Sequence record: PP496438.1
Direction: 5' to 3' (one strand)
DNA length: 64,000 nt
In this document: positions 2,009 through 7,779 of the stretch, piece by piece
Layout: every line of letters begins with the position of its first letter
Position numbering within the stretch: position 1 is the stretch's first letter
Position numbers and translations under genes: made by a program
Notes under the pieces: generated by a model
What the model was told of the DNA's origin: nothing
Databases searched by the model: none
The model's input: only the letters and a program-made list of their open reading frames with translations

Positions 2009-2381
2009 TTACGTCTGGGGTTACAAGCTATTTGGTGGTCTGTACGAAACAGTGCGGGTCAAGTTCCAGAGTGAAGAGATGGACAAACTGGATAACGTCT
2101 TCCTCAGTGAAACGGATGCCCGTAAAGCAGTCGAGACGTTGAACTACAAACGCATTCAAGGCGCCGTGACCTACTTGCACGCTCTCAACAAACTCGACAC
2201 CGAGTCGGTTCAAGGCGAGCAGGCGGTATACACTGTGACTGCAGGTTATGGTGAACCCGACGCGTGTATAGAAGGGTACGAAGATAGGTTGCTGCTCAGA
2301 ACCAAGACAGCATGCCTGATTCGCTTTGACCGCCGCATCACTCAGAACCCACGCAACATCTCATTTCCGGCTATCCTATGA
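1998..2381 (+). CDS. Hypothetical protein (127 aa)
   Basis: ORF overlapping both neighbours in a compact operon. Confidence 0.65.
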   Translation: MWIDYVWGYKLFGGLYETVRVKFQSEEMDKLDNVFLSETDARKAVETLNYKRIQGAVTYLHALNKLDTESVQGEQAVYTVTAGYGEPDACIEGYEDRLLLRTKTACLIRFDRRITQNPRNISFPAIL

Positions 2382-2929
2382 ACATCAAAGAATTCAAGCG
2401 ACCGGCTGACCACATCTGGCGTGGTCACCCTATAACCCAAGAGCAATTCAGGATCATTATCGGTATTGCTCTTTCCAGAAACAGTCTGGAGAGTTACGAT
2501 AGTCTACGCGGGGACGTAGACTCCGAAGAGAAGTTCAATGCTGCGGTGGAAGAGGCGTTGGAAGCCAATGGGTGTCCGGTCCCTGAAGGTCAGGGTGAGT
2601 GGACTCTGGAAATTCCACCAGAGGTACTGGAAGCTCACGCCAACGCAGACTGTCAGGACCGTCGTTGGTTATCCGATCAGCACAAGGAGAACGGTAACTA
2701 CGGCAGTATCTGTTACGTTTGTAAAACAGAATTCGTCGGCAGTAAGAACCGAAATGCGTGTAAGCTCTGCCACGATATGCTTCGTGAGATGAAGCAGCGT
2801 CGGGACTTCGAGTTCCATGCCAAGGAGAACTTGGGTCTTAGCATTCACCGCCTTGCCACTGGCGACTATCAATCATTCGGTGCCCAGATGGCGTGGGACA
2901 CATGGCAATATCTGAGGGCTCAGCAATGA
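2378..2929 (+). CDS. Hypothetical protein with CxxC-x12-CxxC zinc-finger-like motif
   Basis: CYVCKTEFVGSKNRNACKLC; ATGA overlaps at both ends. Confidence 0.65.
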   Translation: MNIKEFKRPADHIWRGHPITQEQFRIIIGIALSRNSLESYDSLRGDVDSEEKFNAAVEEALEANGCPVPEGQGEWTLEIPPEVLEAHANADCQDRRWLSDQHKENGNYGSICYVCKTEFVGSKNRNACKLCHDMLREMKQRRDFEFHAKENLGLSIHRLATGDYQSFGAQMAWDTWQYLRAQQ

Positions 2930-3330
2930 CCGACAACAAAGATCCAGTAGTTGAAGACCGTGACTATCAACAACCTGTCAACGTCGGCACTGTAGGTCAC
3001 GTTGATAACCGGAACAGAGTAGGTATCCTCGGTGGTGGATCGTATCGCCGCAGTCTAGGGCTGGCCGTACTGGCGATTGCAGCTGCCTCTGCTGGTGCGT
3101 TCTCAACTTCACTTCCGCCTATGGTAGAACGTGAGGTAGGGCCTTCCCGCCGACGTAAACCGGAACGCATGGTACCTCGGGTGCTGCCCAAACAGTGGTA
3201 CATGGACACTGGCGGTCACTACAAGAAGACCCCGGTGACCGAGGACGATCATGCGGCCGTCTCAGCCGCCGAAGCCAAGCGCCAACGGAAAGCTAAGAAG
3301 CTTGCCGCTGCCCAATCTAAGGAGTCTTGA
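2926..3330 (+). CDS. Small protein carrying an EF-Tu N-terminal-like motif (PVNVGTVGHVD), a hydrophobic helix and a basic C-terminus
   Basis: Start ATG2926 coupled to upstream stop; motif compared from memory with EF-Tu KPHVNVGTIGHVDHGKT. Confidence 0.65.
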   Translation: MTDNKDPVVEDRDYQQPVNVGTVGHVDNRNRVGILGGGSYRRSLGLAVLAIAAASAGAFSTSLPPMVEREVGPSRRRKPERMVPRVLPKQWYMDTGGHYKKTPVTEDDHAAVSAAEAKRQRKAKKLAAAQSKES

Positions 3331-3332
3331 TC

Positions 3333-3761
3333 ATGGCACCGCAAAAGAAAGCCAAGCCTGCACCCAAGAAGACAGTCCCCGGTCGAGACGATGGCAAGTT
3401 CGTCGCTCGGCTAGGCGCCCTCCGTGATCTGGTTGCCGCACGGGCCAAGGAACAAGGCGTCAGCATGAACACGTGGCTGGTCAGTGCGGCTGCGCAGGTC
3501 CTTGGCGTGGAAAAGGATGAAGACGGTAATCAGTTGCTCCTCCCTCACCTCGGGCAGGGCCAGCCTCCGTTAGTGCCGGGCATGATGGTGCGCAACAAGA
3601 AGGCACCGTATCAGGTGTTCCAGATCAACACGTTCTCCATCAGCCGCTCCGTTGAATCAGCGAAGCAGGTAGATCAGCGACCGTTCATCAAGGTGTATGG
3701 TATCGATCTTAAAACCGGTAAGGGTGTCTCGGCATCGTTGAACGACGTGCAGGTGGTGTGA
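3333..3761 (+). CDS. Arc/HicB-type ribbon-helix-helix DNA-binding protein with C-terminal beta-rich (SH3-like) domain
   Basis: GKFVARLGALRDLVAARAKEQGVSMNTWLVSAA matches the RHH consensus; SD AAGGAG 8 nt upstream of ATG3333. Confidence 0.65.
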   Translation: MAPQKKAKPAPKKTVPGRDDGKFVARLGALRDLVAARAKEQGVSMNTWLVSAAAQVLGVEKDEDGNQLLLPHLGQGQPPLVPGMMVRNKKAPYQVFQINTFSISRSVESAKQVDQRPFIKVYGIDLKTGKGVSASLNDVQVV

Positions 3762-3762
3762 C

Positions 3763-4035
3763 GTGGGTAATCGGGCAGACGCATATCGCCAGCTCAATAC
3801 AGATATGACCAATACGTTGAACCGTCGCCAGCGTCTTGACCGAACCGTAGACATCCTGTTGCGATCTCTCGGGGTGGAAGATGATGCCGCCGACAAGATG
3901 TTGGACGAAGTACAGGCGTGTGACTTCCGGTCGCTGGGTAGACTCCTGCAAGAGAAGTTCCCGGACAGCCCGGATATCGAGTGGTGTCTGAAGACGCATC
4001 AAGGTTACGACACCATTCAAGTTGAGAAGTCCTAA
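3763..4035 (+). CDS. Hypothetical protein (90 aa)
   Basis: GTG start with AGGTGG upstream; fills the gap in the operon. Confidence 0.55.
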   Translation: MGNRADAYRQLNTDMTNTLNRRQRLDRTVDILLRSLGVEDDAADKMLDEVQACDFRSLGRLLQEKFPDSPDIEWCLKTHQGYDTIQVEKS

Positions 4036-4073
4036 TTACTGACTGATGATTCAACTCACTCAGGAAGACAGTT

Positions 4074-4754
4074 ATGACCATTTTACTCTCGAAGTATGTT
4101 GTCACCACGCCGATGACCGCTAAGGTAGTTAAGGGTAAGAACATTGCCCTTACGGTCAAGGGTGACGAGGCATGCGCTCGTTGCGCTGAGTTCATCTCGG
4201 TCAATGCTGACGGTGAACTAGATCTGTTTGCCCCGACCCATGGCGCAGCCACCGAGTCGGTACACAGAACCCGTACCGAGCTGATGGAAGCAGAGTACTG
4301 GTCGTTGGATTCTGCTGCTCACCACTGGCTGCGTCTGGCGATGACCGTCAAGTGCGTCAACCAAGGCGGCCGTGTCGTTATCGGCCAGTGCCACGTGGAA
4401 GACAGCAACAACCCGCTGATCAAGATCTTTTGGGACAAGGAGTCCATCAAGATTGGTTTCCGTGAAAAAGAAACCGAAGAGCCAGTGACCACCACGGTGT
4501 GCCGTGGCGTAGAACTGGGGCAGCGTTTCACCTTGGCGCTGCACATCACCAAGGCGGGTAGCGTCTCGCTGAACGTGTCGGTGGATGGCAAGAAGTACAA
4601 CTTCACGGAAAAGATGGATCCAACGTGGAAAGACTTCGAGTTCAACTTCCATGCCGGCCTGTACAACCAGCTGGACTACTCGGACAAGATCCCTACCACT
4701 GACTGCTCCCGTGCGACCATCCACACGCTGGACGTAGACCACGACGCAGCCTAA
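4074..4754 (+). CDS. Polysaccharide lyase family 7 (alginate lyase-like)
   Basis: Three PL7 motifs in order: RTELME (R[S/T]ELRE), VIGQCH (QIH), FNFHAGLYNQ (YFKAGxYxQ); correct size; SD AGGA; no signal peptide. Confidence 0.8.
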   Translation: MTILLSKYVVTTPMTAKVVKGKNIALTVKGDEACARCAEFISVNADGELDLFAPTHGAATESVHRTRTELMEAEYWSLDSAAHHWLRLAMTVKCVNQGGRVVIGQCHVEDSNNPLIKIFWDKESIKIGFREKETEEPVTTTVCRGVELGQRFTLALHITKAGSVSLNVSVDGKKYNFTEKMDPTWKDFEFNFHAGLYNQLDYSDKIPTTDCSRATIHTLDVDHDAA

Positions 4755-4904: not shown

Positions 4905-7751
4905 TTACATGGTTACCAGAGTTACGAAACGGTTGGACATTGCGCGAGCTGTCAACAGAGTTGCCAACAGTCCGGTGTCTGCCCGATACTTCAACACCAC
5001 CTTGTACACTTTGCCCGGTGTCAGACCAGTCGCCACGTATTCCCAAGAGCAAGTAGCGGCAGTCGCCGAGTAGCAGCTTCTGTCGTCACTGGCCGCGAGC
5101 ACAACCGTAGCACCTTCGGTCATTGTAAAACTGACCCGAGTACCTGCTGCACACTGAGCCCCGAAGGTGACCCTGATAATCCCGGACAGCCCACACGTTA
5201 TCTGCGCAGTCGGTCCTACCGTGGTCAGATCCACGAAGCCCACACTGAGAGTAGCCTCAGATGTATTTAGTGAAGCATTGACCAGTGAGGTGCTATTCGG
5301 TGGAATAGCGTACGTACCATCTCCCTTGAGGAACTTGCCGGTATCAGCAATCTTTGGTGCAGGAACCAGACCATGCTTGCCCCCAGTGGTTGCAGTAGAT
5401 CCCACCATGTCTGCCAGTCCGGCTAGTACGTTCGCCATGAAGGTGTCACTGTCCTTGACCGACATCAGGCTACGTCCGTAGTCCGTGGTCAGGAATGCCT
5501 TAACCGAACTTGCCAGTGCGTCCCCCATGAGCACAGCGTTCTCAGGAAGGGCCAAGGCTGAGATGTTGCTAAGAACGGTAGCCTTGGCTTGATATCCCGA
5601 CAAATCTGGGGGCGCCACAACGGGTTGCCCACCTTCCAGCTCCACTGTGGTTACCTTGATGGCGTTATCCGGCAGTGCAGGCTCCGTGAACAGCCCATTG
5701 GTTTCCGTACCTTTGCGCAGCTTGAACGTACCCGTCGTGTCCGCGTAGATCAAATCAATCCGTTGCTGACTGGTACCTGCTGCGGCAATCGTGAACGTCA
5801 CCGAGGTACCGTTGATGGTGTAGGTGTTCCCTTTTATTCGCCATTGAATCTGAGTGCCGCTGCGCAGCGTCAGGGTCACGTTCAATCCCGTCTGTGTGAC
5901 TTCCAGCGGAGTCAGCAATCCATCTGCCAGCCCGGCTTTCAACGCCAATGCCTGCGTGATGGTGTCCAGCGCTTGCTGCACCGTCTTGGGAATCGGCTTG
6001 TCAGCATCTGCCGTGTTGTCCACGTGGTCCAATCCGATGTTCGCACGCACCTGAGCTTTCTGGGCGTCAGCCAAGGTCTGAGCATTATACCGAACCAGCT
6101 CGGTGATTCCCAGATTGGTACGTACCTGTGCACGCTGCTCCGCAGTGAACACCTGATCGGCATCATACCGGAGGAAGTACCCGGTCAGCAGATCACGCAG
6201 CGACGGGCTGTCACCCAACCCCAACATCTTCAGTCCGAAATCGCTGTAAGGTATGTTGACGTTGCTGCCGTCCAGCTTGAAGCCTAGAATCGTGGCGGGT
6301 GTTGTCCCCATTTTGGCGAGCGCATCCAGCACGTTACTCTTGGCTTGGAATCCCGACAGGTCCGGGGGCGTAACCATCGGCTGCGCACCCTCTACGTATA
6401 CCGAGGTGATCCGAATAGTGCTGGCGGGTACAGCAGGTTCCACGGCGGTGACATTGGATTCCACGCCTTTGAGGACGTGCACAGTGCCGGTCGTATCCCC
6501 GTACAGAAGATCGTATCTCTGCATGCCAACGGCCGACGCATCCAAGACAAAGGATACTGAAGGTGTAGGGGACGTGTAGGTAACTCCGTCGATCCGCCAT
6601 TGTAGGTTACCTCCATTGTCACTTGCCAACCCGATAAGCAGGCCATTGCTGCTGGTAGCTATCGGAGTCAGTAATCCATCCTGAAGGTCTGCCTTCCCGT
6701 CCAGCAAGGCGAGGATGTGGGACAACTGATGCAGGACCGAGGTGGGGATCGGCTTGTCGATGTCCGCTGTATTATCTACTTTGTCGAGGTGCAAGTCAGC
6801 CAGTGTTACAGCGCCTGTCAGCCCATTGATCGATGCGACGACCAGACTGTCCTTGAGCCGGTCCCACCCTTCCCCGTTGGAGATAATCCAATCCCCAATC
6901 TGCCAGTCCTTGTTGCCGTCGATACTGGTAGATCCCGCCACCTTGACGATGTAATACAGACCCTTGTTCGCTGTGCTAGCCGCAGGCATGGCTGGCAAGT
7001 TCTTATCCGCATCCCACGTCCCCGCGTACCGCAGGCTACCGAGAATGGATTCCGGAAGATAGGATAGGTCGATCTTACGATTGCTATCCAGTGGCACCAG
7101 CCCACCTGACTGACCCAGCAGAAGAGCGTCCAACTTGGCGTCCAAAGCCATCTGTTGCGGTAGGGATACAGGCTTCTGAGAATCGGGGATATTGCTTACG
7201 TGTTCCAGGCCCACGGCGGCGGGGGTCAGCACATCTAGCAGACGGTCGCCCCGAATGTACTGCCGGAAGGTACCCAACGGGATCAGGGAGCTGATATCTG
7301 GTGCTGTCACCTTACCCAAGTCCGCGAGGGTTCCGTCGGTGTACATCACCATCAGGTTACCCGCAGCATTGATCATCGATGTGGAGATACCCCGTCCGGC
7401 AGACCCTTTGACCGTGCCCGCATATTCCTGATCCCCGTTGGCATAGGTGATCAACAAGCGACCGTCAGAAGTCACCTGAGTTTTCTGTACCACCTTACCC
7501 GTGGTATCACTACCGGCATCCGAGGTGAGTTGATCCTGTGCTGTCAGGAAGGCCTCGTAGCTGGTCATCAAAGAAGGACGTGAGCAGATCAACAGATTAC
7601 GGTTGACCAACTTGGCGAGTTCTTTCCAGTTCTTGTCAACAACTGCTAAAGACACGTAGTACCACTCGTCTACGCGCATGCGTTTTCCATTGACCTGTAC
7701 GTCTTGCTTCACATTCGGAAATTTCCGGAAGCCTACTAATACGTTATCCAT
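4905..7751 (-). CDS. Virion fibre/spike-like structural protein with internal duplication
   Basis: About 948 aa (ATG7751, SD AGGTG); VDNTADxDKPIP fibre motifs; about 150-aa module duplicated at 756-nt spacing; N-terminus homologous to the neighbouring spike. Confidence 0.65.
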   Translation of the reverse strand: MDNVLVGFRKFPNVKQDVQVNGKRMRVDEWYYVSLAVVDKNWKELAKLVNRNLLICSRPSLMTSYEAFLTAQDQLTSDAGSDTTGKVVQKTQVTSDGRLLITYANGDQEYAGTVKGSAGRGISTSMINAAGNLMVMYTDGTLADLGKVTAPDISSLIPLGTFRQYIRGDRLLDVLTPAAVGLEHVSNIPDSQKPVSLPQQMALDAKLDALLLGQSGGLVPLDSNRKIDLSYLPESILGSLRYAGTWDADKNLPAMPAASTANKGLYYIVKVAGSTSIDGNKDWQIGDWIISNGEGWDRLKDSLVVASINGLTGAVTLADLHLDKVDNTADIDKPIPTSVLHQLSHILALLDGKADLQDGLLTPIATSSNGLLIGLASDNGGNLQWRIDGVTYTSPTPSVSFVLDASAVGMQRYDLLYGDTTGTVHVLKGVESNVTAVEPAVPASTIRITSVYVEGAQPMVTPPDLSGFQAKSNVLDALAKMGTTPATILGFKLDGSNVNIPYSDFGLKMLGLGDSPSLRDLLTGYFLRYDADQVFTAEQRAQVRTNLGITELVRYNAQTLADAQKAQVRANIGLDHVDNTADADKPIPKTVQQALDTITQALALKAGLADGLLTPLEVTQTGLNVTLTLRSGTQIQWRIKGNTYTINGTSVTFTIAAAGTSQQRIDLIYADTTGTFKLRKGTETNGLFTEPALPDNAIKVTTVELEGGQPVVAPPDLSGYQAKATVLSNISALALPENAVLMGDALASSVKAFLTTDYGRSLMSVKDSDTFMANVLAGLADMVGSTATTGGKHGLVPAPKIADTGKFLKGDGTYAIPPNSTSLVNASLNTSEATLSVGFVDLTTVGPTAQITCGLSGIIRVTFGAQCAAGTRVSFTMTEGATVVLAASDDRSCYSATAATCSWEYVATGLTPGKVYKVVLKYRADTGLLATLLTARAMSNRFVTLVTM

Positions 7752-7779
7752 TATACGCACCTATAACCGGATTGAAGAT

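Follow-up and report, generated by a model that had tools for sequence, protein, structure and literature searches.

Why does a small protein of a jumbo phage carry a nearly exact copy of ten residues of the bacterial elongation factor EF-Tu? This question is raised by SKa4_00088, an open reading frame (ORF) of 134 amino acids (aa) annotated as "hypothetical protein" in the genome of Pseudomonas phage vB_PpuM-SKa-4. The window analysed here, to which coordinates refer unless another record is named, comprises 64,000 nucleotides of that genome (PP496438.1, positions 62001-126000). Its first 8 kb agree at 100% identity with positions 62001-70000 of the record. SKa-4 is a virulent jumbo myovirus of 202 kb, which infects P. 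putida PaW85/KT2440 and belongs to genus cluster G3 of the CEPEST collection (PMC7616413). An earlier note, made from the sequence alone, had pointed to the string PVNVGTVGHVD at residues 17-27 of the ORF (nt 2974-3006), followed by NRNR, and to its identity with EF-Tu in nine of ten positions; re-reading of the sequence and a search of the Protein Data Bank (PDB) reproduced all these particulars exactly. Residues 18-27, VNVGTVGHVD, differ from VNVGTIGHVD of EF-Tu (residues ~12-21) solely by a valine for isoleucine change. The evidence presented below leads us to conclude, with high confidence, that the peptide is derived from tuf, maintained by selection, stripped of nucleotide-binding residues, disordered in isolation and portable among unrelated small phage proteins.

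Resemblance to EF-Tu

The match of this single sequence to EF-Tu is not significant when taken alone. A 22-aa peptide matched solely EF-Tu chains in the PDB (43 distinct sequences), with E values of 1.2-1.7 against the full-length chains, and an ungapped score of 26.7 bits corresponded to E = 0.45 when the six-frame translation of the window was compared with one EF-Tu. VNVGTVGHVD was the sole 10-mer of the window with more than five of ten residues identical to that EF-Tu segment. No EF-Tu was retrieved from the PDB with the whole SKa4_00088 protein at E <= 10, and Pfam GTP_EFTU was matched neither by the peptide (E <= 10) nor by the protein (E <= 1). It is the evidence from the protein family, namely profile E values, the sequence of the family member P0012 and conservation of the motif columns, that places the resemblance beyond chance, and on these grounds the likeness to EF-Tu claimed in the earlier note proved to be real.

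Close homologs of SKa4_00088 were found in nine phage records only, all of them sister phages from Estonia and Finland. The homologs are intact in all nine related P. putida phages, four of which bear the contiguous string. At the DNA level, the gene is conserved among the nine phages in a 5' island (codons 1-23) and again in its 3' part, and the middle (codons 24-68) is strongly diverged, with indels; changes in the C-terminal third of the gene are mostly synonymous (8 synonymous, 1 nonsynonymous). A profile search of 1.8 billion representatives added one protein, P0003, encoded on a TARA ocean scaffold, which has a contiguous VGTIGHV close to its start and the shared C-terminal AKRQRK, and P0004-P0017 came from two profile searches of 5.8 billion proteins. 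The resulting SKa-4-type family (P0001-P0017, about 17 clusters) is found only in phages and metagenomes. Scans of viral and genome contigs with the family alignment revealed no relatives, and the corresponding metagenome scan gave only ORFs with the C-terminal module; metagenome ORFs of about 45 aa consist of this module alone.

In the compact members of 82-86 aa (P0006-P0009, P0011, P0012), the EF-Tu-like string lies two residues past the methionine. It is followed by His-Gly and Lys-Lys or Asn-Lys in P0007, P0009 and P0011, and in P0012 the identity extends over 14 consecutive EF-Tu residues, through the full Gly-Lys-Thr, giving E = 0.002-0.009 against full-length EF-Tu chains. With a profile of the ten motif-bearing members, E values were 1.6e-5 to 3e-4 for EF-Tu and 8e-5 for aIF2-gamma; the match covered EF-Tu residues 12-40, the alignment reaching across residues 28-42 of SKa4_00088.

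Conservation of the peptide

Two elements are conserved in the family, the EF-Tu-like peptide and a C-terminal basic helix. In an alignment of 16 rows, residues 18-27 are each identical in 10-12 rows, the valine/isoleucine position excepted. No other columns of the N-terminal half are as well conserved as those of the motif, with a mean of 10.4 identical rows as compared with 3.5-5.4 in the flanking N-terminal segments; the pattern considered in the earlier note as fatal to its idea, in which the flanks would be conserved and the motif would not, is therefore not what is seen once distant homologs are included. The sole comparable block is the C-terminal core, in which residues 105, 108 and 114-121 are identical in 14-16 of the 16 rows; SKa4_00088 has this helix core, A-A-x-A-K-R-x-R, preceded by T-x-x-D. 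The EF-Tu-like peptide behaves as an optional module, being present in 11 of the 16 aligned rows, that of SKa4_00088 included, whereas P0013-P0017 lack it and keep the remainder of the protein.

Between SKa-4 and P0006 all ten motif residues are shared, although six of the ten codons differ, and across 65 small ORFs (<300 aa) bearing the peptide all synonymous codons are in use. Since the codons vary freely, conservation at the level of DNA or RNA was ruled out. As judged from these comparisons, the peptide is in all probability under purifying selection at the protein level. The tests made on the 16-row alignment, on the SKa-4/P0006 codons and on the Erwinia/Salmonella family described below are family-based and not circular.

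Occurrence of the peptide in other small phage proteins

To follow up the proposal of the earlier note that the EF-Tu motif be sought in phage proteins other than GTPases, IMG/VR was scanned with a degenerate back-translation of residues 19-27, with V or I allowed at two positions; the viral-contig loci were thus chosen by the motif itself. The peptide does recur. It was found at no fewer than 99 viral-contig loci, as compared with a rough chance expectation of one or two for the whole collection. Among the loci listed, 29 are ORFs of EF-Tu size and about 11 are either colinear fragments of EF-Tu or ORFs truncated by the end of a contig, while at least 56 are small ORFs, which fall into at least 29 clusters at 70% mutual coverage; cultured phages, considered below, carry such ORFs as well. 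The small ORFs lack an annotation or bear automatically assigned names.

The following figures for small ORFs apply to the matches listed. Their likeness to EF-Tu spans just 9-63 residues, all within EF-Tu 1-64, and they form a graded series from proteins colinear with EF-Tu 1-40 or 1-60 down to remnants of nine residues. Of the 56 ORFs, 20 have the peptide close to the start and 5 close to the end; in the other 31 it is internal, a number inflated by the choice of the most upstream start codon. The GK[ST] sequence is kept in 11 of the 56, as opposed to all 29 full-length EF-Tu ORFs, and in 37 even GK is absent. The final 20 residues carry a net charge of at least +4 in 31% of motif ORFs, as compared with 11% of a crude background. 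Sequence comparison indicates that the peptide is very probably a portable module, placed at the start, in the middle or at the end of proteins from at least 29 otherwise unrelated clusters.

Among cultured phages, the peptide is borne by ORF27 of Aaphi23, a protein of 59 aa encoded between ninB and ninG, by VPDG_00052 of Vibrio phage henriette 12B8, whose gene adjoins that of DHFR, and by P0089 of Vibrio phage 150E35-1; Aggregatibacter phage S1249 and Moraxella phage Mcat7 provided further matches. As a separate observation, P0089 (239 aa; locus L125, 2513-3232) contains ERGITI about 110 residues past its EF-Tu N-terminal segment. This sequence resembles the switch-I region cut by Lit and by the Thoeris caspase, and P0089 is the sole case seen that copies that region.

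A peptide-bearing protein of 109 aa has 50 matching phage records listed, mostly of Erwinia and Salmonella jumbo phages, in which it is labelled "hypothetical", "putative elongation factor Tu", "putative GTPase" or "putative translation elongation factor". In this family the run H-V-N-V-G-T-I-G is invariant in eight of eight members at 48-80% overall identity, and Gly-Lys-Thr is absent. In the Erwinia and Salmonella jumbo phages (loci L126-L132) a GNAT acetyltransferase gene always precedes that of the 109-aa protein, and a macrodomain ("Appr-1-p processing") gene follows two to four genes later in five of seven records (Machinavirus); as enzymes of protein or nucleotide modification, the two could hint at a pathway.

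PHROGs 27465 and 12626 hold peptide proteins as "unknown function", and in small peptide proteins the match to Pfam GTP_EFTU is limited to about positions 1-35 of its 188. SKa4_00088 itself had no match among PHROGs at E <= 0.1, and P0007 and P0012 match 27465/12626 through the motif only. The full-text literature searched contained no published description of small EF-Tu-peptide phage proteins, and one may exist beyond it.

Absence of GTPase features and predicted structure

The earlier note held that SKa4_00088 is not a GTPase, and this was borne out. The Walker A (G1) loop, GxxxxGK[ST], is absent, the sequence being GHVDNRNR, and neither the G2-G5 motifs nor a G domain of ~190 residues was found in Pfam and hidden Markov model (HMM) searches or in AlphaFold2 (AF2) models. 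Because the GTP-binding residues have decayed and the P-loop Lys and Thr are missing, the protein can be no GTPase. Its remaining part is unrelated to EF-Tu, again as noted earlier: an HMM derived from 21 EF-Tu ORFs of full length aligned with just 13 positions of SKa4_00088, and the beta-barrel domains II and III are absent from the 134-aa protein. A split GTPase complemented in trans was considered and rejected, as the EF-Tu HMM detected no other EF-Tu-like piece within genome positions 40000-126000 (86 kb of 202 kb).

Modelling with AF2 suggests that the product of SKa4_00088 is modular and largely disordered. With the 16-sequence alignment, the SKa-4 protein had a predicted local distance difference test score (pLDDT) of 57, and P0007 one of 65. 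Both models consist of isolated helices, with no sheet in that of SKa-4; in both, the motif region is coil (pLDDT ~50) and the hydrophobic helix that follows it is short. The C-terminal helix is the confident element, residues 60-85 of P0007 reaching pLDDT 84-91.

Proposed origin and mechanism

No bacterial protein is more abundant than EF-Tu, and it is a known hub of phage-host conflict, which involves Lit, type IV Thoeris, Avs7 and also Q-beta replicase. Viruses of eukaryotes are known to mimic short linear motifs, that is short, disordered, portable peptides of host origin placed in unrelated viral proteins. One plausible explanation of our findings would involve a similar strategy in phages. 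The module would have originated by capture of the 5' end of tuf, the intermediates being proteins that keep EF-Tu ~1-40 or 1-60. The peptide would work as a short linear motif, folding only upon binding, and would occupy a factor of the host or of a rival phage which recognises the N-terminal segment of EF-Tu where it is accessible, as might be the case in EF-Tu that is nascent, unfolded or cleaved; another possibility would be strand pairing between the peptide and a G domain of the EF-Tu type. The factor that reads the segment could be a G-domain partner, could belong to a quality-control or chaperone step on newly made EF-Tu, or could be a defence sensor or effector by which EF-Tu is monitored. 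Localisation or avidity may come from the hydrophobic and basic helices, through contact with membrane, nucleic acid or ribosome, or through self-association.

Not all parts of this proposal are equally firm. As the overall explanation of SKa4_00088 we consider it the best one, at somewhat below an even chance. That the mechanism is linear-motif mimicry of the EF-Tu N-terminal segment is put forward tentatively, and more guardedly still the generalisation to many phage lineages, which would attach a portable peptide, copied from strand one and half the P-loop of EF-Tu, to small proteins of unrelated kinds as a linear motif that mimics the host. These lineages would include temperate lambdoid, T4-like and jumbo phages of Pseudomonas, Erwinia, Salmonella, Vibrio, Haemophilus/Aggregatibacter and Moraxella, as well as those represented in marine metagenomes, with SKa4_00088 as a minimal and strongly diverged case. 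SKa4_00088 might play the role of a decoy, as the earlier note had suggested. The recurrence of the borrowed peptide in dozens of unrelated small phage proteins points to undescribed host mimicry.

Several observations weigh against a mimic role. EF-Tu residues 12-21 form the central strand of the G-domain sheet and are buried in folded EF-Tu; no known EF-Tu ligand would therefore see them, and to our knowledge none contacts them. For the same reason, a putative reader would need access to EF-Tu in a nascent, unfolded or cleaved state, unless the peptide strand-pairs with a G domain. The known EF-Tu-directed defences act away from the segment that SKa4_00088 copies. In five of the nine sister phages seven extra residues split the motif, with Thr in place of His; this allele is taken as the derived state, since distant relatives keep the contiguous string and some of them are nearer to EF-Tu. 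Between five and seven family members (P0005, P0010, P0013-P0017) are without the motif, which indicates that the EF-Tu module is dispensable for whatever the C-terminal module does. Confidence of the AF2 models is low in the N-terminal half. Finally, as the viral-contig set was selected by the motif, conservation counts within it are partly circular.

Alternative explanations

The alternative that survives best is that SKa4_00088 is a small membrane-associated or self-associating accessory protein (resembling superinfection-exclusion proteins, timing lysis or bearing a signal peptide), in which the hydrophobic helix and the basic tail do the work and the N-terminal peptide is just a structural strand of its own. 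We regard this as unlikely, yet deserving consideration. The Kyte-Doolittle maximum over 19 residues is 1.66 (threshold ~1.6), Arg residues precede the segment and a helix is predicted there (AF2 helix 43-54, low confidence); the motif-free members of the family keep the Gly-rich/hydrophobic part together with the C-terminal helix, and the basic C-terminus resembles the tails of holins. However, the hydrophobic stretch extends over 12-14 residues in most members and is barely hydrophobic in P0003/P0004. The endolysin gene, SKa4_00071, is found some 8 kb upstream and in the opposite orientation, with no endolysin or spanin genes adjoining SKa4_00088. Nor does this explanation account for the EF-Tu string in at least 29 unrelated clusters, many of them without a hydrophobic segment.

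Less probable still is a minimal binder of phosphate, nucleotide or nucleic acid (GTP, alarmones, RNA), in which a relic of strand, P-loop and helix would be assisted by the basic tail. The intact Walker A sequences of P0012 and of 11 listed small ORFs, as well as the enrichment of basic tails, would fit such a function. On the other hand, SKa-4 has NRNR in place of Gly-Lys-Thr, GK is missing from most of the listed small ORFs (37 of 56), and the run that is invariant in the Erwinia/Salmonella family is the strand and not the loop. A decayed loop next to an invariant strand implies that selection acts on the strand part.

The graded series of small ORFs, together with loss of the module in some family members and its splitting in five sister phages, could also be expected if the 5' part of tuf had been captured, joined to a phage gene and then carried along as a functionless relic. 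We find this improbable, as all ten residues were kept between SKa-4 and P0006 despite six changed codons, the Erwinia/Salmonella run is invariant at ~50% overall identity, and the motif has been kept not only by virulent jumbo phages but also by temperate phages infecting different bacterial orders. A by-product of attP/tuf integration was rejected as well: the cases examined are located in nin regions (ninB to ninG/Q) or in virulent jumbo phages, and the examined motif ORFs are not beside integrases or contig ends. Chance resemblance at the junction of the conserved N-terminal island and a variable cassette, an idea which the nine P. putida phages alone would allow (the string straddles that boundary and is split in five of them, and the single-sequence match is not significant), was rejected as most improbable, given that the distant relatives recovered in profile searches keep the contiguous string, with profile E values of 1e-5 to 1e-4.

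Relation to known systems

Returning to the mimicry proposal, EF-Tu has emerged as a hub of phage-host conflict in the systems Lit/Gol, type IV Thoeris caspase and Avs7. Lit cuts switch I of EF-Tu at G59-I60, the type IV Thoeris caspase cuts it at R45 and R59, and Avs7 binds domains II-III. A decoy for Lit, the EF-Tu-directed system named in the earlier note, is not supported, and the same applies to the Thoeris IV caspase, as only EF-Tu ~12-21 is copied and switch I (~45-60) is not. The plant receptor of elf18, an EF-Tu epitope also mentioned there, is irrelevant to a phage of a soil bacterium. The Gol peptide of T4 differs in kind: it is a segment of the capsid protein that binds EF-Tu, whereas the SKa4_00088 peptide is a copy of EF-Tu.

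In terms of the EF-Tu G domain (GTP_EFTU, PF00009), SKa4_00088 matches the beta1/P-loop (G1) segment, and the family profile aligns with residues 12-40; unlike EF-Tu, the protein of 134 aa is without the Walker-A Lys/Thr, G2-G5 and domains II/III, and is predicted to be largely disordered. Proteins of PHROG 27465 (Aaphi23 ORF27 type, 59 aa) and 12626 (109 aa) share with SKa4_00088 the arrangement of an EF-Tu N-terminal segment ahead of unrelated sequence; basic tails occur in several of them, and they are encoded in blocks of accessory or nucleotide-metabolism genes. Outside the motif they are unrelated to SKa4_00088. They keep EF-Tu residues ~1-40 whereas SKa4_00088 keeps ten, and their genes lie in the nin region or in a GNAT-X-macrodomain arrangement, while SKa4_00088 has zinc-ribbon-like and ribbon-helix-helix (RHH) genes as neighbours. 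No described family or system accommodates the EF-Tu-peptide proteins, the nearest being uncharacterised PHROGs and automatic "EF-Tu" labels.

With respect to motif mimicry by viruses of eukaryotes, the difference is that SKa4_00088 copies a buried strand of a folded protein, which is no natural docking motif. A precedent for a phage-encoded fragment of a host translation factor is gp247 of Caulobacter phage Colossus, a truncated EF-Ts (PMC3556154); that fragment is a folded sub-domain of EF-Ts, as opposed to ten residues of EF-Tu.

Recurrent copying by phages of an EF-Tu segment not known to be contacted by any ligand would imply an unrecognised interaction surface or surveillance step, for which a peptide of 10-14 residues offers a concrete handle. 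If true, this would be among the first examples of short-linear-motif mimicry in phages. The findings also correct misleading names: "putative elongation factor Tu" and "putative GTPase" have been assigned to phage proteins of 59-110 aa, none of which is able to be a GTPase.

Gene setting and further observations

Features of SKa4_00088 and its neighbourhood (window coordinates)
Feature	Position	Strand	Residues	Remarks
Upstream gene	2378..2929	+		183 aa
Shine-Dalgarno sequence GAGGG	2914..2918	+		7 nt 5' of ATG; read from sequence
CDS SKa4_00088	2926..3330	+	1-134	134 aa, predicted modular small protein; stop TGA 3328-3330
Acidic N-terminal extension	2926..2976	+	1-17	net charge ~-3
EF-Tu-like peptide VNVGTVGHVD	2977..3006	+	18-27	corresponds to EF-Tu strand beta1 and first half of P-loop
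Degenerate P-loop/helix-alpha1 remnant and Gly-rich stretch NRNRVGILGGGSYRR	3007..3051	+	28-42	Walker-A Lys/Thr absent
Ala/Leu/Gly-rich hydrophobic helix	3052..3117	+	43-64	borderline membrane span; variable between clades
Segment with weak likeness to MltF	3076..3225	+	51-100	
Basic cluster SRRRKPER	3145..3168	+	74-81	invariant in 9 P. putida phages except one Pori-4 substitution
C-terminal basic helix	3241..3324	+	106-133	AF2 helix 106-133
C-terminal helix core AAEAKRQR	3265..3288	+	114-121	universal hallmark of SKa-4-type family
Downstream gene	3333..3761	+		142 aa
Putative alginate lyase gene	4074..4754	+		226 aa; annotated "hypothetical"
"Minor tail protein" gene	4905..7760	-		951 aa

The ATG of SKa4_00088 overlaps the stop codon of the upstream gene (ATGA), and the next gene begins 2 nt past its own stop. 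From this layout, the gene appears to be translationally coupled to its upstream neighbour and looks expressed. It belongs to a long plus-strand series of tightly packed small genes, SKa4_00073-00091, which is preceded by nucleotide-metabolism and DNA genes and ends head-on against tail-fibre genes; SKa4_00088 is situated in a block of small accessory genes. No match to SKa4_00088 was found in Pfam, PHROG, NCBIfam or PADLOC. Within the protein, the acidic extension is confined to the SKa-4 clade, apart from a shorter form in P0003/P0004. The weak resemblance of residues 51-100 to the C-terminal part of the P. aeruginosa lytic transglycosylase MltF (shared ...PR..-KQWY, E 0.5-1.2) was taken as chance.

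The downstream gene encodes a protein with an Arc/HicB-like RHH N-terminus (Pfam HicB E = 1.9e-4, Arc E = 2.2e-3; PHROG 3178, "Arc-like DNA binding domain"). A toxin-antitoxin pair of the HicAB type was considered on account of this neighbour and rejected, as a HicA-fold partner beside the RHH protein was not found; Pfam, NCBIfam and PADLOC assigned SKa4_00088 to neither HicA nor another toxin family. In relatives from the SKa-4-type family the downstream gene codes for an HTH_17 protein instead, and a small DNA-binding gene 3' of the family gene may be a recurring arrangement. The product of the upstream gene has a zinc-ribbon-like CxxC...CxxC segment (PHROG 8931, E = 8e-6). This gene is among the most diverged stretches between two phage clades (~50% DNA identity, with indels), and its divergence runs on into the middle of SKa4_00088. 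Relatives of the SKa-4-type family are often found near Lar-type (zinc-ribbon) restriction-alleviation genes. At the P0003 locus, a 61-aa ORF directly upstream (734-919 of the TARA scaffold, L011) ends in a similar Lys/Arg-rich helix, which suggests tandem small genes with related basic tails.

As to the host, prophage P3 of P. putida PaW85 is reported to confer up to 1e5-fold protection specific to G3 jumbo phages, to which SKa-4 belongs (PMC7616413), and the published RexAB work on the prophage defence of this host yielded nothing on SKa4_00088.

Three further observations concern the adjacent region. At ~3765-4050, the four sister phages Peetri, Amme-1, Voja-6 and KoPa-5 have ~300 nt extra, with two small genes against one in SKa-4. 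The gene directly before the convergent tail-fibre genes encodes a full-length alginate lyase 2 domain (PF08787, E = 6.7e-38), and its product is possibly an exopolysaccharide depolymerase. Inspection by eye of the translated "minor tail protein" revealed an apparent internal duplication of a few hundred residues, D-N-T-A-D-x-D-K-P-I-P and, later, P-P-D-L-S-G-[YF]-Q-A-K being repeated in both blocks.

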